64,000 nt of DNA from Podarcis vaucheri (Eukaryota): NCBI GenBank assembly GCA_965113315.1, contig OZ220364.1; one strand, given 5' to 3'. The position numbers and the translations under genes were made by a program. Of the stretch, positions 3,063 to 61,199 are shown piece after piece. The notes beneath the pieces were generated by a model. The model searched no databases. It had not been told where the DNA came from and saw nothing but the letters and a program-made list of their open reading frames with translations. Each line of letters opens with the position of its first letter. Within the stretch, counting starts at the first letter, position 1.

Positions 3063-3140
3063 AGTCAGTGGTCTCCTACATTTGAGGATGCACACATTTC
3101 CTATTTGCCTTTAGCACACATGTTTGAGAGAATGGTACAG
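3063..3140 (+). CDS. ACSL6: ACSL6 mutually exclusive Y-gate exon SQWSPTFEDAHISYLPLAHMFERMVQ
   Basis: ttccag|AGT…CAG|gtaagg, 78 nt, phase 0/0; S-Y-LPLAHMFE gate motif, paralogous to the exon at 2922. Confidence 0.96.
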
Positions 3141-15962: not shown

Positions 15963-16238
15963 TATATGGAAGCCATTATCAAAAGTTAAGAGAACAGAGC
16001 TCTGCTCTGAACCTCCACTGCTGAGAACACGAACACACACACACACACACAGCTCTGACTCTTGTGATAAGCAGAAGCTGCTGTATCATTGTTTGAGGAA
16101 TGGGGGGCAAAGGGCAAAGAACTTGACAAGCACTCTTATTTAGGAAGCACAGATAAGAGAGCACAGCAAAATTCAAGGGATCAAGATGGGTTTGCTGTGT
16201 CACAAATACAGCCCCCAATTTTATCTGTATCGTTGCAG

Positions 16239-16340
16239 GCCTTCCTGGTGGGGGTTGTTGCACCTGATGCTGAAATCATGCCAGCCTGGGCCAAGAAAAG
16301 AGGCTTTGATGGAACTTTTGCAGAGCTCTGTAAAAATGCG
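16239..16340 (+). CDS. ACSL6: ACSL6 exon AFLVGVVAPDAEIMPAWAKKRGFDGTFAELCKNA
   Basis: ttgcag|GCC…GCG|gtaaat, 102 nt. Confidence 0.93.
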
Positions 16341-16397
16341 GTAAATTGCTTATGTACATGTTCCTGTGCATTATTAACATGCAATTCAGTGCCAATT

Positions 16398-16447
<50 letters not shown>

Positions 16448-17403
16448 TGAACAGACAAACATAAATTATAATTCTAATTGGTAGATCAGAATTTGCCAGT
16501 GCACTGAAAGAGCCTTATGGCGAATGATGCAATATGATAAGCTGAAAGGCCAACTTCAATGTTACATTAAAAGCAGCCTTCCATATCCTGTTGCCCCCAA
16601 GATGTTTTGGACTCCCAACTCCCAGCAGCTCTAGCCAGCATGGCCAATGGTCAGGGATGATGGGAACCGTAATCGAGAATATCAGGAGAGCAGCAAGATG
16701 GGAATGGCTGAATTAAAACAATTCAGCTAATGTGTTTGGATCTGACTGTGACTTTTTCTTTAGAAAAAAAGCAGCTACAGGGGGCTCTGAACTGGATCAG
16801 ATCCACAGCACGGAACGAGGGAGCTTAACCATGCCCAGTTTTCCTGCTAATAATAATGCCCCCAAATGACATATTTACTGCTTTGGATAGTTTTCAGGCC
16901 AAAAGGGAAAAGGGGTTTTAATCCTGGTCAGGATTCCCACAGCTTCTTTTCATAAAGAAAGGCACAGCCAAGTCCAAAGCACAGTAGTTAAAACTGCTTT
17001 TAACATAATGTGTAATTCTGGCTCTAAGTAGCTAGGTGATTACTGTGTTAAGAGGCTGGGACATCTGTTAGAAAGATTCCATTAGATAAGCAAAGCTCTG
17101 TCCTGTAACAGGAGCTAGTATAACATCTTGGTTTTTTTCCACTTTCTTTTATCAGTACTGTTCCATTGCTACAAGATGACATCTATTTTTTTGCACAATG
17201 AGATATACTTTTGTTTCATTTTGTTTTTTGGAGGCTTGGAATGTCTGAGCCAGCGCCAAATCATGTGATTTCTCTGCTGTTGCCTAGACTAGATAAAGAT
17301 TGCAGTAATGTTCCAGAAAGAAGACAGCAAAGCTACTAAAGAGCAGGTTTTATTTCTTCTATGGGTGTTCCAGCACATTTATCTTTGGTGGAAGCCATAA
17401 GTG

Positions 17404-35038: not shown

Positions 35039-35222
35039 ATGGACTGGGTGAAATTGCGTTCCTATTCCCGGAAGAAGCGGGCTCAACAAAATGTCCATTG
35101 TGCATCTCCTATCCCAGCTGTGGCAGCATCTGCTGCTGTAGGTGCAAGGAATGCTAAAGCCAAAGGGAGTCGGCTGCGCCTAGATCTGCTTTCTGGACCT
35201 CGGCAGGAATCTCATGTCAGAA
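35039..35222 (+). CDS. MEIKIN: MEIKIN first coding exon MDWVKLRSYSRKKRAQQ…ESHVR
   Basis: N-terminus resembles human MWPLRVYTRKKR (from memory); upstream acceptor tttgtag| at 35004; the donor AA|gtaatt at 35223 was chosen because it gives phase 1, compatible with the next exon (3' boundary less certain). Confidence 0.7.
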
Positions 35223-37322
35223 GTAATTGTTCATGCAACTACCTTGTCCTTCCCCATCACATCCCTGTTTGTCTGGATTAATTACAATATTTATTGTGTC
35301 TTTGCGTAGTGGCACAAAGGCCCTAACTACTCTACTGTGTACTGTCTAAAAATGTGTAGGGGTGAGAATGTACTCTTAATGTAGTCACTTTATGTACTCT
35401 TAATGTAGTCACTCTTAATGGAAACACTTTATTGGTGAAATTGGTAGTGGGGAAGAGGGTGAGGTGTTTGTGAATGTGTTGGGGGCTTATCTCACCTGCT
35501 ATGTCTTGATGAGTATTGTAGAAAGCCGCTTGGCCTGCTAAATGCATTACATGGGGCACAGAGATGGGGCTCATTGCTTTCCTTAGTTTGGTTTGTATTC
35601 ATAGTTTTTGTCACAGTTGCTCAGACCCTGACAACACTGAGCTCATTACTCCAGAATGTGCTCCTTCTGCAACACTGAATGTCAACAGTGAACTCGGTCC
35701 TGATGTCAGTCTTTACCATCCCAGCTAAAAATCACCAGCTGCAAATACAAATCAACTGTCCCCAGGGCACACAAGGATGAATCCTACCCTTTGAGCCACC
35801 TCACAGTGGAATCCTGTCTTAGGATGCAAGCACCATTGAACCTAGTGAAACTTACTTCTTGGTAAACAGGCATAAGATTGGGTCTTGAGCCAGTTGCTGT
35901 TTTGCTTTTTCCAAGGTTCTCACTGCTTTTGAAAGCAACACTCCTATCACCTGGTGTTTTTCCAAGCTGTTGAATCCCCACCCTCTCAGGCCACTTTCTA
36001 AATTTATGGTGCTTTCTGGGGCTCCTCTGCTCAACGCCATTCTCTTACAGTGGGCAAAGACTCCTGTACGCAATTGTGTGTTCACATATGGTTTGCTGCT
36101 GCATGCTAGGATTTGTGGGGTGATGTAGTGTGCCCCAAACTGACATTAGAAGTCTAGTGGAGCAGCCCTATGTCTTCTCAGGAGTAGGTTTGTAGCATTC
36201 TGCTGAAACACCTGCATTGGCTGCCCATATGCTCCCAGACCAGGTCCAGCGTTCTCTTATACAAAGCCCTGATCAATGTGAGTCCAGGATACCATAATGC
36301 TTCCCTTAACCCTTATATACCAGCTCACTCACTGAGATAATTTGGAGAAGTACTGCTGGTTGTCCCCCATATTTCAGAAGCCTGATTGACTTCAACGAGA
36401 ATTTAGGCATTTAGGATACCTGGTTCCATTCTGTGAACTCTTCCAGCCTAGATTATTCAGGCATTCTCACAGTTAATTTTCAGGCATCTCTTGAAGATCT
36501 TTTTATGCCAGAAGGCCTATGCAGCTGCTTAAACTTTTGAAGATGAGCCACCCATTTTGTGATTATTTTATATTTTTATGGTATATGTTTTATTGTACAT
36601 GCATATTTTGTTGATACTTTATGTTGAGGGAGTTTTCTATAAATATTATACATAGCATGCATGCATACATACATAACGTACATACGGACTTTATGCAAAC
36701 AGAACACTGATGTTGCCATTCAAGAGTGGTGGTTCATCCAAGTCTCCTCTTTTAGAAATTTTTGATGGTGTACACAATTATTTCCCCTACACCTGTAATG
36801 TTTAGAAACAGCCATTTTTATAAATTGTGTGTGGGTGCCACTGACAACAACACCTGTTCTCATCTGTCGCCAAAATAATTTGCCCCTCTTGAAATGCAAA
36901 GAGCAGGTGGTAAATCTGAATATAGTTATGCACACTTAAGTCAGTGGTGGACTTTGGTCTTTCAGATTTCAGTGTCGCCTTGTGGGCAGCCAAAATTCAG
37001 CACCCCCCTTCCTCTAACCACCTGTTTGGCTCAATTCAGTACATCATAGTTGTGGTTCCCCCTATTGCGGTAGAACCAGTCATGCTGCCCTAAATCCACC
37101 TCTGCTTAAATCCTGTTGTTCCCAGAGGGATTTGCAGATTATTCTCAAATATTTTTGAGGTAAAGTGTTGCTTTATTGTGACATATCCCTCAGTCGCATG
37201 ACAAAAAGATCCTTGTTAGGGGGAGGAGGATAAAGACTAAGTATGGCTGCAGTCTTACCATATGGAGTATTTACCTGTGTGAAGAATAGGTGGAAATGTA
37301 ACCTGTTGATGATTATTCTACC

Positions 37323-37471
37323 CAGTGCTTTTTTCTTGGGGGACGCAGAGGTACGCATACCCCTAAACATTTTGTGAATCTAGGTTTGGCCTCATTGAGG
37401 GGGCAGTATTTCAATATGAGTAGGAAAATGAGAGTACCCCTAAACAGTTTTTTAAAGAAAAAAAAGCACTG
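37323..37471. mobile_element. hAT-type MITE
   Basis: TIR CAGTGCTTTTTT / AAAAAAGCACTG; 8-bp TSD ATTCTACC/TTTCTACC. Confidence 0.78.
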
Positions 37472-38190
37472 TTTCTACCTCAACAGCTCTTAAAACTGCG
37501 CAGCAAAAGTCTTTGATCCAGATAGGCTTGGTTTACCAAGTGCATTAAATTGGACTGTCAGTAGGGGGAGCTTTTTGCCTTCTGATATTGTACTAAGTCT
37601 TGGGAGTATCAAGGGGATGGCCTTAATTTCTTTTTTAAAGAAACTGATAGCAAAACCTGATGAAAATTAAAAGGTGCAAAGGAGTTGTTCCTGCAAATCT
37701 CTGGAGAATGAGAGTTTAACAGGTGTCTTGATTTCACAGTTGTACCAGGACTTTCCTTTTGAGAGCAGTAATTCCATTCTAGTGTAACTCCCTGGTTTTC
37801 TTTTGCTCATTCTTTGTTGACTTGCTAGAGTTGTGTTGTCCTTAGCTGATACACAAACAAAACAAATGTGGAGTAATCTACTGACCTTGAAGAGAATATG
37901 TTCAGGGTGAGTTAACTTGCTTTTTAATGCACCCAACTGTATGTGCATATGTCTTTGCTTTGTTTGCATGCCAAACTATGGTGTATCAGGGCTGTGCAGA
38001 CTCCTGAAGAGAATCTCACAGCTGCCTTACTTCCCCCAAGTCATTTTACTCCTGTACTGTGATGAGTTTGGATTGGCTTAGCTTGTCATACAAACCTAGG
38101 CTCACGGGTAAGCTCTTTCCTCGTTTACCATGAGCTGCAGCCAAGAACAAACCATGTAGTTACTGTGACATATGAACTAGACCTGCATAT

Positions 38191-38535
38191 CATAGAATCA
38201 TAGAATCATAGAGTTGGAAGAGACCACAAGGGCCATCGAGTCCAACCCCCTGCCAAGCAGGAAACACCATCAGAGCACTCCTGACATATGGTTGTCAAGC
38301 CTCTGCTTAAAGATCTCCAAAGAAGGAGACTCCACCACACTCCTTGGCAGCAAATTCCACTGTCGAACAACTCTTACTGTCAGGAAGTTCTTCCTAATGT
38401 TTAGGTGGAATCTTCTTTCTTGTATTGGATCCATTGCTCCGTGTCCGCTTCTCTGGAGCAGCAGAAAACAACCTTTCTCCCTCCTCTATGTGACATCCTT
38501 TTATATATTTGAACATGACTATCATATCACCCCTT
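38191..38535 (-). mobile_element. CR1 LINE 3' fragment
   Basis: (CATAGAAT)n is the reverse complement of the CR1 (ATTCTATG)n tail; minus-strand ORF with ORF2 C-terminal peptide RGDMIVMFKYIKG. Confidence 0.88.
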
Positions 38536-39504
38536 ATTCCCATACATGCTAGGGAGCCACACCAATTGCAGAGTGAGGAATGGCAGGCCAGCCCAGGCAA
38601 ACTGTTTAATGGAGCACCCCCTTCCAATAAACGATCCCGCAGTGAGGTTTAACAGAAGGGTAATAGGCCCTTCACCCAGTGTTTTCAACCTGCTGGGTGA
38701 AGTGCTTGCCGCCCTCCATTAAATGCAATTGCAGCAGGGAAGGGTGTTTCACCAAGCAGTTTAGCAAGAGGCTCTTTGAAGGCCCTCTCCATTAAACCTC
38801 TCTTCAGGCATGTTTGGTAATCTGATGGGTAGATGGGAGCTTGCATCCAGCGCACCATCTCCTTCAACCCTTGCCCCCAAGGTTTGAAAGCCCCGTGGGT
38901 CACTTGAAGTCCCAACAATCAGGGCTTCAAAGGGAAACATTGCCTGGTATCACTATGATGTCAGGTGGGCAGCATGGAGGGGGATGGACAAACTATGGGG
39001 TTTATGGGTGAAGTTTAAAGAATGGGTAGTTGGCTAGGGGGTTGGTGAGCAGAGTGAGCATGGGCAGAACCCCTTGTGTGTGTGTAAGTGTGTGTGTATG
39101 TATCTATGGAAATGTAGGTTGAGTGGTTAATATACACTCAAAGAAAATGTGCACATAATCCATGAAGAAGAAACTGTGTACATTCCCTGTTCAATATAAA
39201 TAATCTCAAACAGTCATGGAGGAATGTGCATATCTTGGTTTGAATTTTGTACATACTCGGGCCACCAGAAATAATTACATTGAAGCCCTTCACTCAGCAC
39301 CTGTATACAAATTGGGTGAATGCCAAACAACTGTGACGTCTTAACATAAAGAAATGATTCTTACTCTCTCTCTTTACATCAAAACAAATCCTTTGGGTAA
39401 TGTAGGACTTTAGGTTAATATAAGTTTATACAGTTTATACAAGATTTGTTCTGTTGGATCATAATCCTGTGTTTGGCTAAACATTCACTTTTTTATCCCT
39501 GTAG

Positions 39505-39595
39505 GACAAATTGGAAATGCCATTACAAAAGCATTGCCCAAAATTCAAGAAGCCTCTGGGGTGACCCAGATGGACTGCCTTTCAGTGGAACAAAG
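39505..39595 (+). CDS. MEIKIN: MEIKIN exon (R)QIGNAITKALPKIQEASGVTQMDCLSVEQ(S)
   Basis: ctgtag|GA…AG|gtatgt, 91 nt, phase 1/2; LPKIQE resembles human LSKIAE. Confidence 0.75.
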
Positions 39596-40038
39596 GTATG
39601 TTATAACAACCATTCCAGTTATTCTATTATTGGATCTGGGGAAAGGTCTTGGGCACTTGAGGCCCCAACTGAGTCCACATAGATGTTGTTGGACTACAAA
39701 TCCCATCAACTCTGACAATTGGCTATGCTGATGGGTTGGAGTCCAACAACTTCTGGAAAGCACCAAGTTCCACACCACCAGTCTAGAAACTGTCAATATG
39801 ATGATGCAGTTCAGCTTTAATTGTATTTATAGGCGTTATGGCCAGGACAGGAAGGACTTGCCTTGTTTTGGGCAACATCCCCAGAGCAATAATAATGCCA
39901 ATTTCTGTTGTTAGTTGATTTAAGTTCAAATTAAGAGAAGTCATTCTTCTCAGAAATTCCAGATATCAGAGTTGGTTTGAAATTGCCTATGAAAAATACA
40001 GACCCGTAATTGTGCTGTATTCCCCCCCCCCCAAATAG

Positions 40039-40117
40039 CACTGAATTAAATGAAAATGAAAACAGAAACATGGAGGTGAATAAAAGTATCAATAAAATGG
40101 GCACTGCTGTATTAAAG
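40039..40117 (+). CDS. MEIKIN: MEIKIN exon TELNENENRNMEVNKSINKMGTAVLK
   Basis: aaatag|C…AAG|gtatgt, 79 nt, phase 2/0 links its neighbours. Confidence 0.7.
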
Positions 40118-41111
40118 GTATGTATTTAATTGTTAAACCTCTTAAATCCCAACAAATCTATGTACTACTAGTAGGGTAAAAACGAAAGACTGCTGCACCT
40201 TCAGAGTCCAGCCAATCAAAATACATATACAGTATTTTGTATGCAGCCAGTGGTGTGTCATGGAGCTGCTTTGCACATCACACTAAGCCAAAATCACAAT
40301 TAAACCATGCTAGCTCCTAGGCAGCATGGTAAGTGATCCGGGATGATGGGAGTTATAATTCAAAATATATGGAAAGCACCAGGTTGTTTCTGTATGTATT
40401 CTGTGGTTCTGACTTTAAAGTGGGGGCAAATCCATCTCTCTGAGGTACGTGGAAATATCAGGGTTTGCAGTAGTCACCAGCATAATTAGTGTACCAGCGT
40501 CTCTGATTGCTGGGAGAATTTTAGTGTGGAGGAATATTAGAAGTCATACTGTTTCAAGTGGTTGGTGTAGAACAGATGAATTGTCATAAAGACCTAAGAA
40601 TATTGTCCAGGCAAGTTCATGGTTATGCTCTATTCACATTGACTTGGATAGTGGCTGGAAATGTGCATCAATCACAATGAAATTTATACAAGTTGACAAT
40701 ACCACTATAGAGGTTCAGTGCCCAGGAAATAACCACCATATGGGTTCAGCTTTAAATTATTCTCTCTGTCATGTTAGTCTCCACACAGAACCTCTGATCT
40801 TAACAGAGACTGTGCTTGGAAGAAATTCTGGGGCTTTGTGGTGAATGAGAAATTCTCCCATTCTGCTTGATGACCTTCTGCAGATGAACAATTTACATAA
40901 TTTAAAATTGCTTCCATGTGGCCATTGATAATACATTTCAAATCCAAGAGTTGCTCTGATCAATGTTAAGGAATATTTTGTTAATGACAAAACTGTGCAG
41001 AACTGTTTCTTTCTGAGAAATTATTTTCATGAATTTTGTATGGTCATAAGGGAAATCACAGTTTTATCTACGTCATACCTTGTCATCTGCATCTTTCACT
41101 GTTGTTCTTAG

Positions 41112-41172
41112 GATTCTTTGCATTTAAGCTCTGCAAGTAAAGAGAGTGCGAGATATAGTGAAACTACATCAG
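41112..41172 (+). CDS. MEIKIN: MEIKIN exon DSLHLSSASKESARYSETTS(G)
   Basis: ttcttag|GAT…TCAG|gtgagt, 61 nt, phase 0/1. Confidence 0.75.
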
Positions 41173-42440
41173 GTGAGTATGCTTAAGCATACTGGATCAG
41201 GAACTGTATTCTTCTAAATATTATTCCAAGTTCCCTAATGTGACTAGTCCTCATGTTAATATTTTAGTTCCCCCAACCCAATTTTAATTCCCCCAACCCA
41301 ACTCTGTGGCCAGTGCTGAAGCTTTCCTCAGGAGCAATTCATATCACTAGTGTTTCTTGTTCAGCCTTCTACATAAGAAGAAGAAAGGCAGAAAAAAAAT
41401 GAATTATTGGGTGAACAGGAGCGAATAACCTTTGGCCCTTCAGATGTTGCTGAATTACAACTCCCATAATCCCTGAGCACTTGGACTGCTGGAAGTTGTA
41501 GTTCAGCAACCTCTGGAGGGCCACAGGTTCTTCACCTCTGGTCTAGAAATACCAGTGGGTGTTCTAGATAGCTTTGCTGAATGCTTGGGCTTCAGGTTGG
41601 TGTATTATAACTAGAGATTTGAAGACCTTTAAAAAAAAACCACAGAAATACGTTTTTCCAGTTTTTTCCTATTTCTGAAAAATTGGAGGAAAGGTTCTTC
41701 CCCCCACTATTTTTTCTGGTTGGGGGGGGGGGAAGAATTCCAGGCCTTCACATCACTAATTATAACAGACTTCTAAAAATTCAAGTAGATTTTGAGCACC
41801 AGTCTGTAGACCAGGATATAACTTTTAATGCCTTGCAGATCTGTATAGCCCAAATATGTGGATAATAACTTAATATTCATTCCCATCAACCATCCTTTTA
41901 ATTGACTGCTCACAGTGGCTGATGGCACCTAAGTCCTAGTCTTATTTCCACCCTAATCATATTGTGCACTTTGGGTCATTTGGTCCACTGCCCATCTGAT
42001 GAAGAAAAGGGATCGCCAGTTACTTTGTTGAAATCCTCAATATTCTTATGAAAAATTGTTAATATATTATAAACCTGTTCTGTTCAGTTTAATTAACCAT
42101 TTTAAACCATGGCACTACATAGAAGTGGTGCTGTTTATCATTTCCAGGATACCTACAGTATTTCTTTTATATAGAATAAATATATTACTGCTTATGATGG
42201 AAGCTGAACATTGCATGTATACAGAAAGAAGTGCAGAGGTTAGCGTATTGGACTAGGAGACGATGGTTCAAATGCGCTTTCAGCCATGAAACTCACTGGG
42301 TTACTTTGGCCCAGTTGCCATCTTTCAATCAAACCTCCCTCACAGGGTTATTGTGAGGGTAAAAGAGGGATAGAAAGAACCATGTGGATGTATGTCACAT
42401 GGAGCTCCTTAAAGGAAATTTAGGACATGTAACGTAATAC

Positions 42441-42794
42441 GCGGGTGGCGCTGTGGGCTAAAGCCTCAGCGCCTAGGGCTTGCCGATCGAAAGGTCGGCG
42501 GTTCGAATCCCCGCGGCGGGGTGCGCTCCCGCTGCTCGGTCCCAGCGCCTGCCAACCTAGCAGTTCGAAAGCACCCCCGGGGGCAAGTAGATAAATAGGT
42601 ACCGCTTACCAGCGGGAAGGTAAACGGCGTTCCGTGTGCGGCTCTGGCTCGCCAGAGCAGCGTTGTCACGCTGGCCACGTGACCCGGAAGTGTCTCCGGA
42701 CAGCGCTGGCCCCCGGCCAATAGATGTGAGATGGGCGCACAAACCCCAGAGTCTGTCAAGACTGGCCCGTTCGGGCAGGGGTACCTTTACCTTT
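42441..42794 (+). mobile_element. Sauria SINE, CpG-rich (young)
   Basis: Same consensus as 8595; TSD TAACGTAATAC at 42430-42440 and 42795-42805; inserted at the tail of an older MIR/CORE-like SINE (~42230-42430). Confidence 0.92.
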
Positions 42795-43129
42795 TAACGT
42801 AATACAAAATGAAAACTAATCCAATTGAAGCTATTAGTGTTGCTCTTCTCCATCTTTCTCTCACGTGGCCTGCCTTCTGTTCTTGTGTTCGCAGGACTAT
42901 ATTGTATATTGTATAACATACAGTCTTAACTGCATCACATTAAACACATACATATATCTAATGTTTTTCCTAGTTCAGCTCTCCACTGGAGATGTGTATT
43001 TTTTTTTTCAAACTGAAGCCCAGATCTTAACATTTGTATGCATTTATAGGTGCCCAGCATATCAAGGGTACCTGAATGAGCACTTTCAGACTGAGTAGTG
43101 TCCTGATCTCATTTTTCCTTTATTTCCAG

Positions 43130-43270
43130 GAATGACTTTACCCACAGGTGTTTCACATTTTCTGCTGCAGTGTTTGGATGAAGAGTCTTCTCTGTGCTCT
43201 AATACAGAATCTAGTGATGGAGCAAGTACTTATTCATCACCTGAGATATTCAGAGATGAAAACACATTAG
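43130..43270 (+). CDS. MEIKIN: MEIKIN exon MTLPTGVSHFLLQCLDEESS…YSSPEIFRDENTL, with the separase ExxR site
   Basis: ttccag|GA…TTAG|gtatgc, 141 nt; SPEIFR matches human SPELFR. Confidence 0.88.
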
Positions 43271-43588: not shown

Positions 43589-44048
43589 GAGGAAAAACAT
43601 TTGGAGAGCAATTGACTCCCCATCCCTGCTGTAAGGCCTGACTACACTACATTTTTATTTGATTAATCAAGTCCATCATATAGTCAAGTGGGGAAAACTT
43701 TGCTAATTGATTGTTGCCAAATGCCTCTTAATTTGGTCAGAGAATGTCCATTTAATCCAAGGCTAGAGTTCAGAGTGTCCTTGGCAATTCTTGACCTATA
43801 CTACATTTTTTTGATTGGCTTAACCCCAGCAATGGGCAATCAACCACACATTGATTGCTAAACAAGTGCTTCAAATTACATTCTCAATAATTTTTTGTAG
43901 GGAGGGGATCTAAAGTCTTTACACTTTATGCCATAACAAGCCAACTGAAATCTGTGGAGGTTCTTCAAGAGTGATCAGCTTACAAATGCAATCAGCTTAC
44001 AAGCATTTCAGAAAGATGGTATCAACCATATTGTGTTATGTGTTTTAG

Positions 44049-44168
44049 AAAAAAGCAGCACTGGTCCAGAAGAATGCCTTGGGCACAGGAATTCAACCCT
44101 CTTGGATACCAGCAAAGCCATCAACATAGACAAGATGCCACATGTGCCAAATCTTTCACAGATACTGG
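44049..44168 (+). CDS. MEIKIN: MEIKIN exon KSSTGPEECLGHRNSTLLDTSKAINIDKMPHVPNLSQIL
   Basis: ttttag|AA…CTGG|gtaacc, 120 nt; NSTLLDTSKA matches the conserved Meikin core. Confidence 0.92.
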
Positions 44169-44800
44169 GTAACCTTGAACATGTTACATAAGTGTTTGGT
44201 TGCCAGCTTGAGTTTAAACCTTTCTTTGATGCAGAGGGGAGCAAATGAGGGTGTTGGGAACTTGAGTTGGTGCTTCCACACTCCAAGTGGCAGAGCTGAA
44301 TGTCTGGAAATAAAGCAGCTTGATGATGAGACCATGGGAAGACTAAAGTGGTTTGAAGAGGAAAGATTAAGCATCCTAGACACAATTGGTCAAGCTACAG
44401 GGTGGGGCCAATTCATATATCCTTTTCTTCAGTCCGTCTCCTGTGTCAAACCAGCATCTATTCAGGGCTGCCCCAGCTGCCCAGCAACTTACTATAACAA
44501 CTTCATGGTTAGCTCCAGCACCTATTTTTCTTGAAAAAAAGCACTTGGAACAAATGTCAGTTCGTTTTTCTGTGAATTGACGTTTGTTCCAGTTCAGGGC
44601 TAAACAGCTGATTATCCCAGGGAAAGCAAGGGGCAAGCGAAAATCCTCTTGGACCCATGCTTTGAAAGCACAGGACAAGCAGAAAAACTCAGACCTGTGC
44701 TTTCTGGGCATGGGACAAGCAGAGGTGTGGATGAGTCCTGTGTTCTGCTGTATTGATCTAGCTTACCTTGATCACACTCTTCACATTTGATCTCTTCTAG

Positions 44801-44837
44801 AAACCACTTTAGGAAAAAAAGACCAGAGCATTACAAG
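44801..44837 (+). CDS. MEIKIN: MEIKIN short exon (E)TTLGKKDQSIT(R)
   Basis: ttctag|AA…AAG|gtaata, 37 nt, phase 1/2. Confidence 0.7.
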
Positions 44838-44857
44838 GTAATATCAAAGCAAAATAT

Positions 44858-45379
44858 TGTTACATGCCATCCTAGTCTCCGAGCGGTGTGAGATTCCAGG
44901 GGTTCCAGGTGCTTCTCCAGGGATTGTGTTTCTAAAGAAATGAGCCACAGCGGAGGCTGTGATGTCTTTAGGATATACGGTTTATTTACACATACTTTAT
45001 ATACAACCTGAGTCTGCGATGGGGAGGTTCAAAGCATTAACACTCCAAAAGGTTCTTGCCCCTCCCATGGCCATAGTCTTGGATGCCAGCAAAAATCAGC
45101 CATCAGCCTCTGGTCAGCTTGCTATGTTTAACAGACTGCCACTTTTCTCTCAGGCTTGCTGACACAGCCGGCAACTATTTTTTCTCCAACCGACGTCATC
45201 CCCAACTGCAATCCTAAAAACAACTGCTCTCCTTCCAATTCTAAAACTCCACTTCAAAGGCTTTTGTCTCTCTAGCCAATTATGAGTTGAGAGAGGGGGT
45301 CGGGTATCTGGCACCCAGGAATTATAAGCAGGGTCCAGGAATTAGAAAGGGAATTCAGGCACCCCACAAACGCATAACA
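44858..45379 (-). mobile_element. Solo LTR (Gypsy-like)
   Basis: TGTTA…TAACA termini, 4-bp TSD ATAT (44854-44857, 45380-45383), minus-strand AATAAA at 44981-44986. Confidence 0.7.
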
Positions 45380-45737
45380 ATATTTTTTTGTGACTGCTCT
45401 TTTTTTAGAGACAGTATATATGCAACTGCTCGGAGTAATGACTCTGATTGTGGCAACTACATAAAGCACTGCTTTAGCCATGGCCATTAAGAAGCAACAG
45501 CTGTAGCCAGGGAAATCCCCTCTCACAAAGAGAGCACATTGGTGGAGCATCCTATTATGGCAAAATTGAAGATATTAATTGGTCTGTTGACGCATTAGCC
45601 AGTGTATTTTCACTAGATTTGAAGTGATATTAGCCAATTAGGAAAGAAATCACTTGGATCTTAATGGAAATTTTGTGAGCAGCTAAGCATATAACTACTT
45701 TCTTACTTCAGTCTTTTTTTATTTTTTACTGTGGCAG

Positions 45738-45793
45738 GCTATCAAAGCAGAAATCACGTTCTGAATTGACAGATGTTTCAGCTGTAGTTGCAG
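45738..45793 (+). CDS. MEIKIN: MEIKIN exon LSKQKSRSELTDVSAVVA(G)
   Basis: tggcag|G…GCAG|gtaaat, 56 nt, phase 2/1. Confidence 0.7.
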
Positions 45794-46553
45794 GTAAATA
45801 ATGTTATTTAAAACAAACAAGTTGCAAGTTATGTGACGCGACTAGCAGATTTGTTTTTGCTGTGTGCTTTTAAAATAACAAGTTCAGGCCACAGGGCCTG
45901 TGTATAATGATGGCCCTGAAAGGTTGCCCCTCTTTGCCTGGCTTGGTGGCCCTCCTGGCATTGAAATTCCCTTAGCTCAAACAGCTGCAGAGCCGGATAA
46001 GAGATGAACATGGAAGCCAGCACTAAAGCAGAATGAGGGAAGTAAACATGCCATTGCCTCTTCCTCCTCAGTCAGGCAATTAGAACGCTGCAAGGCATGG
46101 CAGGAACACTGACTGCAAACAGGGAAAATGCTGGCGGTTTTTTAAAACGAAACACCAAAATACTGTGGCTCCTCCTGGCTGCAGACTGCACCCCAGTCCT
46201 TCCTGGTTACCATGGCAACTGTGTTTGTGGACTCTTGAAAAGTGATTCATCCAGAGTAGCTCACCCCCACCCCATTTTCATACTTGCAGACACACATACC
46301 ATTTAAGAATCTCTTTCCACTAAAAAAAGGGGAAGGAAAGAGAAAATTGAGTGAAAAGGACAAGCTACATAGTGTTAAGGGGTGGTTAAAAGCTCAGAAA
46401 TTGAGGCCGAATGAATGGCTCTGCAGATCAGCCAGTAAATGACTGCAGATCAGCCCATGACCCCCAGACTGCAGCACAAAATTGAGACAGAGAAGTAGCT
46501 GGACCAATTTGCACAGTCAAATTGAAGAATTATTTTTCTTCCTGTTTTCTCAG

Positions 46554-46648
46554 GGAAACAAGTGTGCAAAATTTTGCCTGCAAAGGAAAAGACACCTGAA
46601 TTGCAATCTTTTGGAGCCTCCTTATTGCCTCAAAAACAAACAAAAAAG
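46554..46648 (+). CDS. MEIKIN: MEIKIN exon KQVCKILPAKEKTPELQSFGASLLPQKQTKK
   Basis: ttctcag|GG…AAG|gtgacg, 95 nt, phase 1/0; resembles human ACEILLAEKT…KTKKK. Confidence 0.78.
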
Positions 46649-48359
46649 GTGACGAGTTTAATGTTCATAGGTTGCCATGTGTGAATTGGGATAGTGGTGT
46701 GGTGGACAACTAACTGTAGTGACACAACAATGGAAAGATAGCTCGGTAGAGTATGAGACACTTAATCTCAGAGCCGTAGGCCATGTTGGGGAGAAGATGC
46801 CTGCATTGTAGGGGGTTGGACTACATGACCCACATGGTCCCTTCCAACTCTACAATTCTATAATTTTATCCATCCTACCTATAGATAAATCTGGACAGAA
46901 GTGTGGTAATAATCTTCAGTTGACATTAGTCCTTTCATTCATTTTTAAAAAAAAAATCCAGTAAGGGGTCATCATGGGTTTACTGGGGATGGGGCTATAG
47001 TCCTGGCACACTACCTGGCCCCATGTTTAGATGAGCATTCTGTTACCCTGGATCAGTCACCCTGACCAAGGGGCAGGAGCTCAAGCAGTAATCACATGAC
47101 GGCACCTTAGTGCCAGTGATGAGTGAAGGGGGCTGTACTTGATGCTACAACTTCAGAATAGGTCATGCTATGGTGGCGCAGTGGGATTGTTAACCCTTCC
47201 CCTGCTTGCTGACTCTGCTCTCACAATTCTTCCCTGGTCCTCCCCACGCACTTTATGGGGCAGCTTTCTGTGTTCCATTGTACATTGAATTATTTGGGTG
47301 GGTAATGATTAAGCACCTCTTGTTTTCTTTCTTTTGAAGTTGGATTTCAAGTTGACCTCGTGGAAATCATTGGAACATCCAATTATAAAATAGCAGAATT
47401 AAAGTTGTCCCTTTAACCTGTCTTAAATAGCCACCCAAATAAAAATGTTCTGGTAACTTAGGCTCTAAATTTGGTAAACCTTTGGAGAAGGAAGCTGCTA
47501 TACCTGAGGCATCCTCAAAAGAAACTTACTGGGCCCTAGTGGTACAAATTCAGTTTTTTCATATATTATAGAAAGGTGCTCTCGGCTTATCTTTCAACTA
47601 ATCTTTTTACATAATATGAAACCACTTCCCATCTAGAATCTCTAGTCAGTGGCTATTACTTGTTCTTCTAAGTGGGTGTGGTTATCTTTTCTTCTGTGTA
47701 ACTCATTAAATAGTTGACAGTGTGAGCTCAGTGAAGGCCAAAGTAGAGGGGCAAACCACTCACTTGCAGAATTTTCCTTTTACAAATATGTTTGTGTGTG
47801 TGTGTGTGTGTGTGGTCTTGATCAAAATAAAGGGTGGCTTCTGTTCATGATGAAAGGAAAGCTATTTGTTAAAAGAAAAAACTGTGCAAAGACAAGCTTC
47901 ATAGCAGATATCTAGATTGCTCCTCACATTGCCCTTTTGTCCTCACACTGAGATTTTGGAATTGGGAATTGTTAGTGTTCTTGTGCTAAGATCATTTGGA
48001 ACAAATGTCATGTTTTTAGTGAACATAAAATGGGTCAAGCACTCTATTGGCTGGCCGTCTTCCAGGGACTGTCATGTGATCCTATAGTCCTAATGAAGTA
48101 TAGTGCAACGACTAAAACCTTGATCTCATCTATCCTCTGCCATGAGATTACTAGTTGGCCTTCAGCAAGCTGCTATCTCTTTCTACCTCCCCTGCAACAT
48201 GAGGCTAATAAGTGAGAATTTCATCATGCTATTGTTCATAAGAATTACTGAGATGTATACAAAGCGCTTCAATTGCTCAAAATGCTGTCTAAAACACTTT
48301 TAAGTACGTCCTTTACAAGTGTTGATGATACTACTATACAATTCTTCATGTTTCTGTAG

Positions 48360-48512
48360 ACTAAAGATCAGCAACCCAGGAAAATGAAGTGCACAAAAAG
48401 AGTACTGTTTTCCTCATCCTCATCCTCATCCTCTCCTTATGTATTGAGTCCAGCCAAATTTTGCGGAATTGCAGCTGAAACCTTAGGCTCTGCACAGCCA
48501 GGTACTGGCATG
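48360..48512 (+). CDS. MEIKIN: MEIKIN exon TKDQQPRKMKCTKRVLFSSSSSSSSPYVLSPAKFCGIAAETLGSAQPGTGM
   Basis: ctgtag|ACT…ATG|gtaagt, 153 nt, phase 0/0, open; no human counterpart that I recall. Confidence 0.62.
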
Positions 48513-49481
48513 GTAAGTTGTTTTCAACTGCTAAGCTTTAAGGGAATGGGGAGTGCTGCACTTGGGGGTTAGAGAGCTGCTGCAAGGCTAAGAGATGCAG
48601 AAACTATACTGAATGGTGGGTGCTATGGGAAATTACAACGCAAAAGCTGGCAAAAGACAAAAGTGGCACTAGTTAAACTAGGTGTCGGGAGACCTGGGGC
48701 TTTGGGATGTTGTTGGACCCCAGCTCCCATCGTCTCTAACTATTGGACACACTGACTAGGGCTGATGGGAGGCTGGGTCATGTTAAACAATATGAATGAG
48801 CCTTTTGTGGTCTGTGGGCTGAATTGGCTCTTCAAAATTGGGAGTCTCTCCTCCATTTGGCGTGGTTCCACTTAGAGGTGTATTTAGTGTTCAGGAAACA
48901 GGAAGTAGTGCTTCAGTTAGCTTTTCCATACTTCCATACTTTTGCCCCCTGCTTTCTAGGCACAGGTCTGGGCTTTAAAGCTCATTGTCTGAGCACTTCC
49001 CACCCACCCACACTTTCCCCAGGAAAACTCTAATGCAGAATCAAAACAAATGGCAATTCGGGTTTTGGGCAAATTGCCATTCGCTCCGATTCAGTGATAA
49101 AGAGTGGGGCTTTGCAGGAAAAGAACTGGCGCAAAAATAAAAGTGCTTGGATGGGGGGCATTAAAACACAGACCTATGTCTAGAAACACAGCACAAAAGG
49201 AAGTCTGGATGAGCCCAGAGTCTTCTCAGGCATGTTCACTTGACATTTTGCTTTCAGAATGAATTCAGAGTATCCTGCGATACAACCAAAGCATTCTGTT
49301 TACAGGAAAATCTGGTTATCTGCTTAAAATGGATTTCTCTCTTATAAAGGAATTCAATTTGGAAACTGGATGGGGCTGCAGGTAGATGTTTTATATGAAG
49401 GAAATTAAATATTTTAAAATTAACAGCAGAACAGATTGCTCTCCCTCTTTGCTTCTGATAAACTTTTATGTCTGTCTATCG

Positions 49482-49557
49482 GAGAGCAGTTCCAGAGCAG
49501 TGAACATAGGAAAGAATAAAGCGCTGTTAACAAGTGCAGCACTTCTACAGACAGAAG
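49482..49557 (+). pseudogene. MEIKIN: Apparently decayed MEIKIN exon ESSSRAVNIGKNKALLTSAALLQTE (homologue of the human GKKNRGLLTSTPSSETA exon)
   Basis: Translation similarity at the expected gene position; expected donor reads G|attgag (no GT) followed by an in-frame TGA; acceptor weak (ctatcggag). Confidence 0.55.
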
Positions 49558-50037
49558 ATTGAGAGTTTAGCAAAATAAGCTCAAAACAAATGTAACCATT
49601 TGCATTTATTTCCATGTGAATGATACGATGCAATGAAATGTGTTTATATTTAAAACATCAGGGTCTTGGTGTTGTTGTTTTTATCAGTTTCAGGCGGCCA
49701 TTTTCAAACCAGTTTTGTGGGCCAAAAGCTATATCTCATTTATCTGCAAAATTTCCTGGCTTTTGAAATGTTTCTCAGTACTGTATGTGCTAGTAGCTGT
49801 TTTGAAATCTGGGGGCCACTTTAGGCAATACCTTTCCTGTGTAGAAAATAATCATCATGCAGGAAGAAAAGTACTTGCATTCATATAAAAATTGCACATA
49901 AATAACCGTTGCGGCTTCCAAATATGTGGCAAAATAGATGTCGGTACTGGTGGCCAGAGTGTAGGGAAAAAGCTGTACATCTCCACTTACCTGTTGTTCA
50001 AACCACAAACTAATTTCTTTTCTTCCTCTTTACTAAT

Positions 50038-50040
<3 letters not shown>

Positions 50041-50083
<43 letters not shown>

Positions 50084-50100
50084 CATTATTATTATTATTA
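50041..50100. repeat. (TTA)n microsatellite
   Basis: About 20 units with one TCA interruption. Confidence 0.95.
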
Positions 50101-50643
50101 AACATGCATCTCTTAAGATACACAAAAGGCTTAAAAGAGATAGTGAATGGCTTCGTGGTAGTGTGTGGATTTCACTCTTGGTCTACTCCGTTCAATGTGC
50201 CACACTAGCTTTCTTTTAAAGGAAAGAAAAGAAGCACAAACAAACTGTAAGATTGCCTTCATTTGCCTTATCAGTAGTTTAGGTCATCCTGAAGACAGAT
50301 AAGTATATATTCAGAGATTCTCAAGTATTACACTAAATGTTCCGCTCAATTCAGAAAAGCAGTATGCATGTGTCCTTTTGTCTTTCTTCTGACAAACAAC
50401 TGCAGTTACCCCCTAGGGCTGTAGCAGTGTGCTGGGAGAGAGAAGCTGAGTGACCTGTGACAGTCACGTACTGACAAAGAGAAGGCTAATTGTCATTCTT
50501 CCTCATGACTCAGACAGGCTGTATATGCAAAGTATAGGATGCCAGGAGGGGACTCATTTGAAAGCTTGCTTCACCTTTTATTTGAAGGATCTTAGATCCG
50601 TATTAATGAGAGTGCTGTACATTTTTGTTTTGTTTTGATATAG

Positions 50644-50769
50644 TTGGACTCTTCATCAGTGCATAAAGTCTCACTCGGTGAAGCTTCCTTGCCAAGCACA
50701 AGTCGTTCAAATGTAAATTCAAAAGAAGTCATTCCTGCTTCCCTGTCTCCAGAAAGTGTTATTCATCAG
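50644..50769 (+). CDS. MEIKIN: MEIKIN exon LDSSSVHKVSLGEASLPSTSRSNVNSKEVIPASLSPESVIHQ
   Basis: gatatag|TTG…CAG|gttata, 126 nt, phase 0/0; resembles human IDLSSVQKASFEE…VNSNEIVP. Confidence 0.8.
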
Positions 50770-50821
50770 GTTATATCTCTATTATATTTTTCCCTTTGCG
50801 GCAGTGCTAACCACACGTACT

Positions 50822-50858
<37 letters not shown>

Positions 50859-51732
50859 ACATACTTTTAAATAGACAGGGCAGGAGAACATATCAAATGA
50901 TTCCAAAACTCAAAATTGCCTATCTATGGTAAGTGAGAATGGGATATTTAAATCGAAGTCATGTTGTGAGGCCTGTCCTAAACCTGTTTGATTATACAAG
51001 CTGCTGCCACAAAGAAAGTCCAATGTGGAGCTGCATTAAAAAAATATATATAAAAAAAAGCACAAGCAAGAATGCGCAGTACTTGGCCACATTTTAATTA
51101 TTTTAAACTTTAAGACAAGAAGTACTCCTCCCCACCCACCAATAAGGGATTATGAAGGAAAATGAATCCCTTTGACTTCCATTCAAAAAACCAGCTGGAC
51201 CAATTTGTCTTCTACTGGGAAAGCTTAATCCACTCCTGGACCCATAAATCTCATCCAAAGGCTAAAATAATAATAATAGATGTGTAAAGAATCTCTAGTA
51301 CAGTGAATGGGGGAACACAGAGCTTTGTTTTATGCAGTGTCGGTTGGAACCCAAAGTATAGATTAAAGTGGAGAGAGTACAGAGTGTCTCAAAAACAGTT
51401 TGTAAAGTACAGATTCAGGGTGAATCGGGGGTGGGGCTTGGGCTGTGTACATCCCTACCTTTTGGCACCATCCATAATGCACTTTTGCTGAAAAAATAGC
51501 AGAACCAGGGTTTTTTCCACCCAGAGCCTGTAGGGGGTGAAAAGAGTATGTTTGTAGTGAACACATTTAGGACACCTTCCTGTTGGCGGAATGTCCCACA
51601 TAACATGGCTTTTTCCAGATATTAAAATTACAACCATAGTTTAGTGTTATCGTTTATGAGCAGCACCAAGCCTTGAGCTTGTGAACGCCCTTCTCCTTTT
51701 CCTTTGGTACAGCCTAAAGGGGACTGGACGCA

Positions 51733-52095
51733 GGGACATGGGTGGCACTGTGGTCTAAACCACTGAGCCTAGGGCTTGCCGATCAGAAGGTCGGCGGTTT
51801 GAATCCCTGCGACAGGGTGAGCTGAGCTCCTGTTGTTCGGTCCCAGCTCCTGCCATCCTAGCAGTTTGAAAGCATGTCAAAGTGCAAGTAGATAAATAGG
51901 TGGGAAAGGTAAACGGCATTTCCATGTGCTACTCTAGTTTTGCCAGAAGCGGCTTAGTCATGCTGGCCACGTGACCCAGAAAAACTGTCTGTGGACAAAC
52001 GTTGGCTCCCTCGGCTAGTAAAGCAAGATGAGTGCCGCAACCCCAGAGTCGTTCATGACTGGACTTAACTGTCAGGGGTCCTTTACCTTTACCTT
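51733..52095 (+). mobile_element. Sauria SINE, different subfamily
   Basis: GGGACATGGGTGGCACTGTGG head, (ACCTTT)n tail, TSD TAAAGGGGACTGGA at 51715-51728 and 52096-52109. Confidence 0.9.
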
Positions 52096-52398
52096 TAAAG
52101 GGGACTGGAAGCTTTTGCTTTTAAACTAATCATAATTCCTCATTATGTTCAAACTTGAGAGTTCTCTGACTAGCATAAATGATGCTTTGTCAGGATCAAA
52201 TATGATTTACAATCCTGACTTTCTGTCTAACTGTTTTTGAACTCTTGAGTTTCCTGAGTTAAGATGCAAACAAAGGAACTCTGCTTTGCTTAAGTGGAAG
52301 CAAATGCTTCCAGGTTCTTCCCCGTGGCCACTCTGGAGGAGAAAAGGGGAGAGGGAGCATAGGAGCCCAAAGCTATTGGTTCATAATTCAGTGCTATA

Positions 52399-53054
52399 AC
52401 TTCATTGGGTCCCGGCACCGAGGAGGATAAAATAAGATGTTCAAAAGCACAGCGAGATAATGAAAGGAAATAAAATCCAAAGGAAGGAGGGGAGTCGGCA
52501 ACAAAGGGCATTTAGTTAAAAGAGTTCTTTGAGCTCCGATAAGAGTGTCTTACCTCGGCGCCATCTTGAAAGTACTCCCTAAATTAATAATCCCAGCCCA
52601 ACGTAGGGCTTTTATGCTGGCCCGGTTGAATGTCTTTCCCTCAGCATTTGTCCGGGGAAGATATCAAAACATCCCTAGAAACAAGAGATTCTGCAGATGC
52701 TCTATGAATGTCCCGGACACTGTAGAGCATATTCTCTTTCATTGCCCATTGTACAGTACGCTCCGTCAACGCGTGCTGTCCCCTCTTTTGGGTGGTCTGG
52801 AACCCCAGCAAGGTGAATGTGCGGGATTCTGCCTATCCGACGTTGACCAAAGGGTAATGGCGGGGGTAGCCGAGTTTTTGGCTGCAGTCCTCCAAGGAGC
52901 AGGTTAACAAGGAAAACCACTGATTTTATATGTATATATATATATATATGATTGTAGCCAACTGCTGCCTTTTTATATATATTTCAAGGCTTTTACATGT
53001 TATTTTCCTTCTTACGGTTTTTATTTCCATAATGCCTAATAAAGGTTTGATTTC
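52399..53054 (+). mobile_element. 5'-truncated RTE-X-like non-LTR retrotransposon
   Basis: ORF 52545-52907 RRAFMLAR…GRY…RFCRC…EHILFHCPLY (C-terminal CCHC); AATAAA 53038-53043; 14-bp TSD AATTCAGTGCTATA at 52385-52398 and 53055-53068. Confidence 0.8.
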
Positions 53055-53124
53055 AATTCAGTGCTATATCAAAGCCCAGTCTATGCCTTGTAGGATGGCC
53101 TAAGTTTTGTTCCATTTCTTTCAG

Positions 53125-53248
53125 TGTCTACGTAACCCTCCAGAAATCTGCTGTATCATTAAAGCTTCACCAGGATCTAGACCACTGAAAGTTCTCCAAC
53201 ACCCACTGAAAAGAAAAAGAGAGTTTCCCCCACCAGGAGCAACTGAAG
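53125..53248 (+). CDS. MEIKIN: MEIKIN exon CLRNPPEICCIIKASPGSRPLKVLQHPLKRKREFPPPGATE (CENP-C-binding C-terminal region)
   Basis: tttcag|TGT…GAAG|gtaaag, 124 nt; EICCII-x-x-SPG signature. Confidence 0.92.
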
Positions 53249-59765: not shown

Positions 59766-60808
59766 TTGATAGATCTCAGCAAGAAAATTAAGGGAGCAGT
59801 GTTCAAAAAGGTTTCAGCCTGATCTGGGCCTTTGCAGGTGTGTTTCAGGATCATTTTGTATAATACTTCCAGGGTATTACATACAGAACAAGTTACACTA
59901 ATGCCAATTCTTTGGGCTCAATGGGCACTTACAGCTAGTGATGAAAGTGAGTAGAAGCTCTCAGTAGTGTTTTCTATGTGTTAGTTGGACATACCAAGGA
60001 GGATCAGGATGGTAATACAGTATACACACCCGTTATTAGTCTGAAAGGGCCTGCCACATGACTGGGAACCCTGATTGCCCCAGAGTTCCTAAACATGGGG
60101 AGCAGCCCTTCCAAATAAACACTGGATATTGGTGGGGGCAGGCCCCATTAGACAGGCATGGACTATTGTCCTTTCACATGCTCAGGGATTGCATGGGGGA
60201 GGACAACTAACACCTGTCAAGAACCCCTTTCCCTGCTTCCTTCAGCACTGTGGCTGCTGCCTAGTCACTCATCTTCCCTATGTCAGTGACCTGTCTTGGA
60301 CTTAGAGCAACATAAAAGTCTGCATGTTCTGCTGCTTCAAGATTCAATGAAGCACTACCTGAGGGGTGTGTGTGTGTGAGAGAGAGAGAGCAAGTAGGAA
60401 TACTTAAGCAGATCCACACATTTCAATCATAATCTGCATTTAGAGCACATAAAATAATTTTGGGGAGTGTAGCTTGGGGTGCAGGGAAAGGTAGCTTTGT
60501 CAGGGGGGACTACAGTTTGCAAGATCCTTGTTCCGTGATCATGTGCTTTAAATGTGTGTTGAATGACATTTAATTGCACAGCTCGGGATTGCAGAGAAAA
60601 GGGGAAATTGTGGCTGCTGCAGTTGGAAGACTTCGTGGCCGTCCCAAGGTGAGCCTCGTTCATGGAAATTCGTTTAGTTTTAAACTGGGCCTTACTAAAT
60701 TACTCCGAGAACCACGCATGTTCTTAATTAAAAGTTCAGAATTTTTGGTGCTGATAAATCCAGGGTTGCAGGTTCTGCTGTTTCTGCATTGCTGGGGTTG
60801 GACCAGAT

Positions 60809-60984
60809 CAGAGCTTTCCTGTTAGTGTGTGGGCTGCAGTGTGTACTGTGTGTCACGTGACTGTTCCTGCGCTGTTCCTGGGGCTGTTAAGGGGTTAGTT
60901 TTGATTGTAAAACTGAATTACTGTGTCACGAAATGTTGCATGTCTAAAAAGTGTGTCACCAACATGAAAAGTTTGGAAAGCTCT
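60809..60984. mobile_element. hAT-type MITE nested in a CR1-tailed SINE remnant (~60783-61028)
   Basis: TIR CAGAGCTTTCC / GGAAAGCTCT; the host sequence GGGGTTGGACCAGAT…GATCCTCATGGTCCCTTCCAATTCTAC is split by the insertion. Confidence 0.65.
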
Positions 60985-61199
60985 AGGTGATCCTCATGGT
61001 CCCTTCCAATTCTACAATTTTATTCTAATTCTGGGGAAGCAGAACCAAAGCAAAAACACGGGGGGGGGCCGCTAATAAGTCAAGAGTTTAACTACGATCG
61101 TGACAAAATACAAACGGGGCAAGCTTTTAATTTTTTGCCTTCTTGCATCCCTGTTATTGACCCTTGTTGGGTTTGGGAGGGGGTGCAGATTCAAACATC

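Follow-up and report, generated by a model that had tools for sequence, protein, structure and literature searches.

A conserved LxxIxE motif on the predicted separase-detachable part of lizard MEIKIN is a candidate docking site for PP2A-B56

Meikin, the meiosis-specific kinetochore protein, is cut in two by separase, and the locus described here raises the question of what the N-terminal part does before it is released. The DNA analysed is a stretch of 64,000 nucleotides from Podarcis vaucheri (contig OZ220364.1 of assembly GCA_965113315.1), referred to below as the window; all coordinates are those of the window. By homology, the part examined most closely, 35039-43270, makes up the 5' half of a lacertid lizard's MEIKIN gene. 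In human Meikin, separase cleaves after the arginine of ELFR (residues 151-154), and cleavage is promoted by the serine at P6, S149; in the mouse, N-terminally tagged Meikin is off the kinetochores after meiosis I, and the C-terminal fragment stays there through CENP-C and binds Plk1 (bioRxiv 10.1101/2020.11.29.402537). The same study reports that the N-terminal fragment, N-Meikin (1-154), does not bind Plk1, that Meikin, once cleaved, has a lower potency towards Plk1, and that a normal meiosis II depends on the cut (bioRxiv 10.1101/2020.11.29.402537). In the published work on Meikin we found no function assigned to the N-terminal fragment. A sequence-only reading of the window had proposed that this fragment is a detachable module for the protection of cohesion, with a PDS5-binding YSR motif at its N-terminus and a PP2A-B56-binding LxxIxE motif further along. 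We find that the LxxIxE motif lies in an island of sequence conserved throughout the sauropsids examined. The likeliest role of this island is to bring PP2A, through its regulatory subunit B56, to kinetochore-bound Meikin during meiosis I, a reading to which we would give a probability of roughly one half.

The motif itself, LPKIQE (39534-39551, + strand), is encoded by exon 2 and fits the published definition of a B56-binding motif, [LMFI]xx[ILV]xE, in which the Glu is invariant and Leu at P1 and Ile at P4 are preferred (PMC10970375). It is contained in a conserved island, K-x-L-P-K-I-x-E-x-x-(E/G)-V, made up of residues 70-81 (39528..39563, +). The string alone is not beyond chance, since 0.27 of shuffled 188-residue N-terminal fragments carry a match to the same pattern, but its conservation is. 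A set of 131 non-redundant sauropsid N-terminal fragments was aligned, from 22 squamates, 13 turtles, 2 crocodilians and 94 birds, and the pattern is present at the aligned site in every one of them (131/131). The site is found as LPKIQE, LPKIKE, LPKIRE, LSKINE, LPAIQE, LPKVQE, LPKLHE, LAKIKE, LQKITE, LPDINE and other variants. P1 is always Leu and P6 always Glu, P4 is Ile and only rarely Val or Leu, and P2, P3 and P5 drift.

When conservation is balanced by clade, the values are 0.98 for K70, 1.00 for L72, 0.93 for P73, 0.91 for K74, 0.95 for I75, 1.00 for E77, 0.86 for E80 and 0.89 for V81, compared to 0.43 and 0.52 for the ten residues on either side; the median over the N-terminal fragment is 0.60. 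Selective conservation of the motif against divergent flanks was a check that the sequence-only reading had itself proposed, and the motif came through it (1.00, 0.95 and 1.00 at the defining positions, against 0.43-0.52). Registers in which residues i, i+3 and i+5 are all conserved at 0.95 or more are rare, six out of 183, with five of them falling in a TLPTGVSxFLLxCLD block closer to the cut site, and the chance that one of these few would fit the B56 pattern is about 1%. In an alignment of 48 full-length sauropsid sequences, L72 and E77 are among the 25 invariant columns of the whole protein. AlphaFold2 (AF2), run with this alignment, predicts a protein which is almost wholly disordered, with a mean pLDDT (its per-residue confidence score) of 49 and without secondary structure over residues 60-100. 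With P1, P4 and P6 fixed across squamates, turtles, crocodilians and birds, and P2, P3 and P5 free to drift, LPKIQE is on sequence grounds a real short linear motif and bears the signature of a functional one; it would be a new candidate instance of a known motif class in a known protein.

Two further strings in the fragment deserve mention. A second match to the B56 pattern, LQCLDE (43165-43182, +), is found inside the FLLxCLD block; conservation of its P6 Glu is only 0.28, and on that evidence it is an internal example of a chance match. In turtles (P0010-P0021) and most birds the aligned site reads LPKIKEN (window positions 39543-39554), which creates an overlapping KEN box (KIKEN) and could add regulation by the anaphase-promoting complex (APC/C) in some lineages. 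The KEN box was rejected as a conserved feature because it is confined to birds and turtles and missing from squamates and crocodilians.

Where the LxxIxE motif sits with respect to the separase site is what gives it interest. SPEIFR (43237..43254, +), in exon 5, is a predicted separase cleavage motif of the ExxR type, with Ser-Pro at P6 and P5 of the cut. S175, P176, E177 and R180 are invariant in sauropsids and belong to the invariant columns of the 48-sequence alignment. Exons 1-5 encode a predicted disordered N-terminal fragment which ends at SPEIFR. The YSR-like string, the LxxIxE motif and the separase site follow one another in the order that the sequence-only reading had given, both motifs being upstream of the invariant SPExFR, and in the predicted protein the layout of a detachable module holds. 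That the N-terminal fragment leaves the kinetochore after cleavage, which that reading had also supposed, is already published for mouse and human (bioRxiv 10.1101/2020.11.29.402537). The lizard protein resembles the mammalian separase substrate in its S-P-E-x-F-R sequence, in the Ser-Pro at P6/P5, in the similar distance of the site from the N-terminus and in having a predicted C-terminal kinetochore-binding block (bioRxiv 10.1101/2020.11.29.402537). It differs in having Ile at P3, and the LLTSTA PLK1-docking exon of other reptiles is degenerate in the lizard.

Just upstream of the separase site is the most conserved block of the N-terminal fragment, T-S-G-M-T-L-P-T-G-V-S-x-F-L-L-x-C-L-D (residues 137-155, 43130-43195, +), for which no role turned up in the literature seen. 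As it is located N-terminal of the cut site, it is a candidate docking element for separase or for another partner. Separase exosite motifs (LPE, NHLEYE and LxxpS/D/E) have been described beside the cleavage sites in SCC1. LPKIQE was considered as such an exosite motif and rejected, since about 100 residues separate it from the cut site downstream in Meikin and it does not have the LPE form.

If the island does bind B56, the LxxIxE site would recruit PP2A-B56 to Meikin at the kinetochore and so produce a Plk1/B56 scaffold similar to BubR1. Because the dock is some 100 residues upstream of the cut, cleavage by separase at anaphase I would break its link to the C-terminal fragment, which is anchored through CENP-C and binds PLK1. 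Candidate substrates for the docked phosphatase, which are pure inference, would be Rec8, phospho-sites of Meikin itself (including the P6 Ser and the Plk1-docking sites) and attachment factors. An invariant sauropsid motif of the B56 type, on the part of the protein that separase removes, leads to a concrete hypothesis, ie that Meikin holds PP2A-B56 directly beside its Plk1 and that separase ends this arrangement. If true, it would bear on how the protection of centromeric cohesin is lost from one meiotic division to the next, and on the balance of kinase and phosphatase on a single kinetochore scaffold, as in BubR1. Should the island turn out not to bind B56, it still marks a conserved interaction site in Meikin.

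The nearest parallel is the KARD of BubR1 (KKLSPIIEDSREATH), an LxxIxE dock for PP2A-B56 at kinetochores, which is likewise carried by a disordered kinetochore scaffold that also docks a Polo-like kinase. It shares with the Meikin site of most taxa Lys residues just upstream and Ser or acidic residues at P7-9 (PMC10970375). The Meikin motif differs in having Pro at P2, which leaves no phosphorylatable P2, and Lys at P3/P5, and its docking of B56 is putative. Unlike BubR1, Meikin carries the motif on a fragment which separase separates from the kinetochore anchor, and its expression is meiosis-specific. In C. elegans, an LxxIxE motif of BUB-1 targets PP2A:B56 in oocyte meiosis I, and there too recruitment of B56 by a meiotic kinetochore protein is direct and does without shugoshin (PMC7787666). 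However, BUB-1 is an unrelated protein, its docking has been demonstrated experimentally, and it works without protease-controlled release (PMC7787666). A third comparison is with shugoshin. With a dock on Meikin, PP2A-B56 would sit close to centromeric cohesin in meiosis I, as it does with SGO2. Shugoshin binds the PP2A holoenzyme through a coiled coil and is not known to use LxxIxE. The position in the pathway also differs, the published model putting Meikin upstream of SGO2, by way of Plk1 and Bub1 (bioRxiv 10.1101/2020.11.29.402537).

Several observations weigh against docking of B56. Firstly, in that same model PP2A is recruited indirectly, via Plk1, Bub1 and Sgo2 (bioRxiv 10.1101/2020.11.29.402537). 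Secondly, the affinity may be low. Binding is known to be enhanced if P2 and P7-9 are acidic or phosphorylated and if a basic patch precedes the motif by no more than about 15 residues (PMC10970375). In most taxa P7-9 read N-S/L-E and position -2 is K, with K-G-K/N upstream in birds and turtles, and K70 is nearly invariant across the set; Podarcis vaucheri has Pro at P2 and A-S-G at P7-9. A low affinity is suggested by the basic residues at P3/P5 (K, K/Q), the Pro at P2 and the non-acidic A-S-G of the lizard. Thirdly, the conservation of K70, P73 and K74 is left unexplained by LxxIxE alone, and K-x-L-P also fits a cyclin-docking RxL motif. Fourthly, the alignment covers sauropsids, conservation of the motif is shown for that group only, and B56 docking has the standing of a candidate. 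Fifthly, no reads fell on exons 1-3 in three bulk RNA-seq runs carrying the same species label, where only intronic repeats were covered, which for runs of unstated tissue does not amount to silence of the gene; the RNA data did not reach the 5' end of the mRNA. In the literature available as full text (subscription papers being partly outside reach) we met with reviews and yeast work, and with no report of B56 docking directly on Meikin or of binding between Meikin and PDS5. A full-text search for LSKIAE, which the sequence-only reading had put forward together with VYTRK as the human counterparts of the two motifs, found only unrelated papers.

The alternative that stands up best is that a different, so far undescribed partner binds the island, or that the island works inside Meikin itself, for instance by boosting the binding or activation of PLK1, the fit to LxxIxE being a coincidence. 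The stretch conserved is 12 residues long compared to the six of the motif, and the 1% chance that a triple-conserved register would fit the pattern is small but not zero. Full-length Meikin is also more potent than C-Meikin towards Plk1 (bioRxiv 10.1101/2020.11.29.402537), even though N-Meikin alone does not bind the kinase. Among the known motif classes compared by eye, however, PP1 RVxF, calcineurin PxIxIT, ABBA, HP1 PxVxL, MIM and the KI motifs of KNL1, none fits the island, and its KEN box is limited to birds and turtles. A partner other than B56 is possible, and we regard it as somewhat unlikely.

The K-x-L-P at the start of the island could instead be a cyclin dock of the RxL/Cy type, through which a cyclin-CDK would phosphorylate S23-P24 and S175-P176 and tune cleavage. 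This would account for the conservation of K70 (0.98) and P73 (0.93), alongside L72 (1.00), of which LxxIxE alone leaves the first two unexplained. S23, P24, S175 and P176 are all invariant. The P6 Ser of the cut site is proline-directed, and its mutation lowers the cleavage of human Meikin (bioRxiv 10.1101/2020.11.29.402537). But an RxL motif does not need the invariant I75 and E77, and freedom at P2, P3 and P5 with P1, P4 and P6 fixed is the pattern of variation of LxxIxE. We consider a cyclin dock improbable, and docking of B56 is preferred as the explanation of the island.

The sequence-only reading went further than this in joining the LxxIxE motif to a second one, and the fate of that proposal depends on the N-terminus. 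RSYSR, residues 7-11 (35057..35071, +), is a YSR-like match to the PDS5-binding 5-mer. It fits the strict form [K/R][S/T]YSR as well as the broader consensus given for WAPL, sororin, Haspin and ATRX, [R/K]-[S/T]-Y-[K/S/T/G/A]-[Q/R/K/A] (PMC12264150). The hydrophobic residue three positions before the Tyr, L6, agrees with the fungal Wapl consensus, [M/Phi]xxYG[K/R] (PMC10656103). Among shuffled 188-residue N-terminal fragments, the strict motif occurs in just 0.0008 and the broad 5-mer in 0.01. The non-avian sauropsid N-terminus, M-[DE]-W-x-K-L-R-[ST]-Y, shows good conservation, with W3, L6 and Y9 at 0.92-1.00 within each clade and fixed in 37/37 sequences, and AF2 predicts a short helix at residues 3-10. 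In WAPL the YSR-type motif is at the extreme N-terminus, as it is in lizard Meikin.

Conservation of the YSR motif, for which the sequence-only reading had asked the same question as for LxxIxE, gave a divided answer. The Tyr is retained in all 37 non-avian sauropsids and in one of the 94 birds; the other 93 have Ala or another residue at the site, eg MERCRWQSASRGGKAPRKKRRSSPLPG. The complete 5-mer is satisfied in 23/37 non-avian sequences and 0/94 birds. In the remaining 14/37 it is broken, as RTYSG, RTYSE (geckos), RSYSG, RSYSH (skink), HSYSR (python), HAYSR (monitor), RHYSR, RAYSR and one sequence that could not be parsed. The first two positions of the 5-mer and its Arg vary in geckos, skinks, snakes and monitors. 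What all clades have in common in exon 1 is a basic cluster, RKKR in the lizard (residues 11-14) and APRKKRRSSPLPG in birds, followed by an invariant S-P-x-P. Cluster and S23-P24-x-P26 together span 35069..35116 (+), and S23, P24 and P26 are invariant in the 48 diverse sauropsid MEIKINs. The motif Arg, which is also the first residue of RKKR, may be conserved as part of a patch resembling a nuclear localisation signal that precedes the conserved S-P-x-P; a nuclear localisation signal with a CDK site is a rival reading of this N-terminus. Unlike the motifs of WAPL, sororin, Haspin and ATRX, that of Meikin has been lost in birds and is degenerate in several squamates, and binding to the APDAP site of PDS5 is putative. 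Binding of RSYSR to PDS5 is possible but unlikely, and it would not be a conserved core feature of the protein. At most it would be a lineage-restricted extra, the Tyr having gone from birds and the 5-mer being broken in several lineages of squamates. Of what the sequence-only reading had put forward, the gene and the order of the elements have stood; the comparison of orthologues that it had proposed speaks clearly for LxxIxE and only half for the YSR motif.

Its full model was of a dual cohesion protector, in which RSYSR would compete with WAPL at the APDAP site of PDS5, LPKIQE would recruit PP2A-B56, and separase, by cutting at SPExFR, would remove both at the transition from meiosis I to meiosis II. 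It is favoured by the fit of RSYSR to both consensus sequences, by the rarity of the strict motif (0.08% of shuffles) and by the fixed, predicted helical setting of Tyr9 in non-avian sauropsids. A further point for it, and the closest functional pointer we found, comes from fission yeast, where loss of Moa1 leads to an excess of Mis4-bound cohesin at core centromeres and Pds5-bound cohesin is not increased (PMC10917647). Against it are the birds, the 14 broken 5-mers, and the double role of the Arg in the basic cluster. The YSR motifs of WAPL and sororin have themselves been reported as not strictly essential (PMC10656103), and we found no paper that links Meikin to PDS5 binding. A protector module combining PP2A-B56 with a WAPL-competing PDS5 ligand, the latter confined to non-avian lineages, appears quite improbable. 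If true, it would connect the activity of separase in anaphase I, directly and at the molecular level, with the loss of centromeric cohesin protection in meiosis II. A last explanation, that both matches are functionless chance strings in a fast-evolving disordered protein, can point to the 27% of shuffled fragments with a B56 match and to the unconserved LQCLDE in the same protein, but is very unlikely for LPKIQE, whose defining positions are kept in 131/131 sequences across four groups of sauropsids while their neighbours diverge.

The assignment of these motifs depends on the gene model, which was derived as follows. Exons were compared individually by reference, and the full-length comparisons are those of database orthologues. 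A phmmer search with exon 1 alone against 1.8 billion representative proteins gave eight matches, all of them MEIKIN N-termini. A word search starting from one turtle match among these gave 232 relatives, which carry the name meiosis-specific kinetochore protein and Pfam PF27928 (Meikin) and are spread over turtles, crocodilians, birds and squamates. Further word searches, with a profile of short forms and with a 230-aa gecko fragment, likewise gave lists of sauropsids. Scanned against a Pfam copy that lacks PF27928, neither exons 1, 2 and 5 nor full-length orthologues produced a match. Searches of PDB sequences with exon 1 and with a family profile gave chance matches only, with no solved Meikin and no WAPL or sororin peptides. 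Orthology extends along the whole protein, the exons matching Podarcis lilfordi and Zootoca MEIKIN in order at 75-100% identity. By tblastn with the Podarcis lilfordi protein (P0119), eleven exons are 91-100% identical and one 75%, and they are collinear on the + strand from 35039 to about 53250.

Exon 1 (35039..35222, +) contains the start codon and 61 codons plus one nucleotide, with the donor GTAATT at 35223. Its translation reads MDWVKLRSYSRKKRAQQ..., in a second excerpt MDWVKLRSYSRKKRAQQNVHCASPIP..., and is 95% identical to residues 1-61 of Podarcis lilfordi MEIKIN. The Kozak context of the ATG (35039) is strong, A being found at -3 and G at +4, and an in-frame stop lies 20 codons 5' of this ATG with no other between. 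Exon 2 (39505..39595, +; acceptor tgtAG, donor GTATGT) was placed by exon-wise homology and by an RNA-derived contig from the run denoted X1. Its translation includes ITKALPKIQEASG, in a second excerpt GNAITKALPKIQEASGVTQMDC, and the frame is kept through the phase-1 junction between exons 1 and 2. Exon 3 (40039..40117, +) matches residues 91-118 of P0119 by tblastn at 93% identity and is joined to exon 2 in the spliced contig. Exon 4 (41112..41172, +; donor CAG|GTGAGT) matches residues 119-139 at 95%. These two exons maintain the reading frame between exons 2 and 5; a single exon at 41129-41172 in their place was rejected, as homology indicates two, at 40039-40117 and 41112-41172. Exon 5 (43130..43270, +), with the TLPTGVSxFLLxCLD block and the separase site, is 100% identical to residues 139-185 of P0119 and reads MTLPTGVSHFLLQCLDEE...STYSSPEIFRDENTL.

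The later exons were located with P0119 and P0153 as tblastn queries, each exon being 75-100% identical, and their boundaries are approximate: 44042-44167, 44797-44838, 45736-45798, 46553-46651, 48360-48512, 50644-50769 and 53122-53247, all on the + strand. Among them (44042..53247) is encoded the C-terminal PPEICCIIKASP block. A putative kinetochore (CENP-C) binding block, which includes CLRNPPEICCIIKASPGSRPLKVLQ and is conserved across sauropsids, lies at about 53122-53247. The identity of the gene, its start and its frames had been read correctly from the letters alone, and the three strings are encoded where they had been placed, in exons 1, 2 and 5.

The junction between exons 2 and 3 is confirmed by a spliced X1 contig, the match of which begins exactly at 39505 and passes from 39593 to 40037 over a GT..AG intron. 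Another X1 contig covers 35071-35221 and confirms transcription of exon 1. What the X1 contigs cover takes in neither the 5' end of the mRNA nor the junction of exons 1 and 2. Within intron 1, two segments (37216-37603 and 38186-38573) attracted hundreds to thousands of RNA reads in all runs, with many variant letters and loose ends. They behave like copies of an expressed multi-copy repeat and not like MEIKIN exons.

Further along the gene, at 49470-49563 (+), there is a remnant of the LLTSTA(F/Y)LQPEDLE exon, which is the PLK1-docking region in Rhineura, Pogona, Elgaria and a turtle. The remnant reads GKNKALLTSAALLQTED, then an in-frame TGA and EF, so that LLTSTA has become LLTSAA by a change of Thr to Ala ahead of the stop. 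Gene models of Podarcis and Zootoca skip this exon.

Upstream of MEIKIN, coding pieces resembling ACSL occur on the + strand at 2853-3152 and 16089-16484. The first consists of two adjacent copies of a sequence containing (F/Y)LPLAHMFER, with a weak match to the AMP-binding Pfam family (19 bits); the copies resemble alternative 'gate' exons, as of an acyl-CoA synthetase. The second resembles the C-terminal part of ACSL and includes EIMPAWAKKRGF. Together they suggest the presence of ACSL6 upstream of MEIKIN, in the same orientation. At the other end of the window, the region 60000-62600 is GC-rich (0.54 compared to about 0.41 elsewhere) and contains long spurious open reading frames on both strands. 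The stretch at 60-62.5 kb looks like the CpG-island promoter of the next gene downstream of MEIKIN. In mammals the gene order is ACSL6-MEIKIN-FNIP1, which the candidate neighbours in the window would fit.

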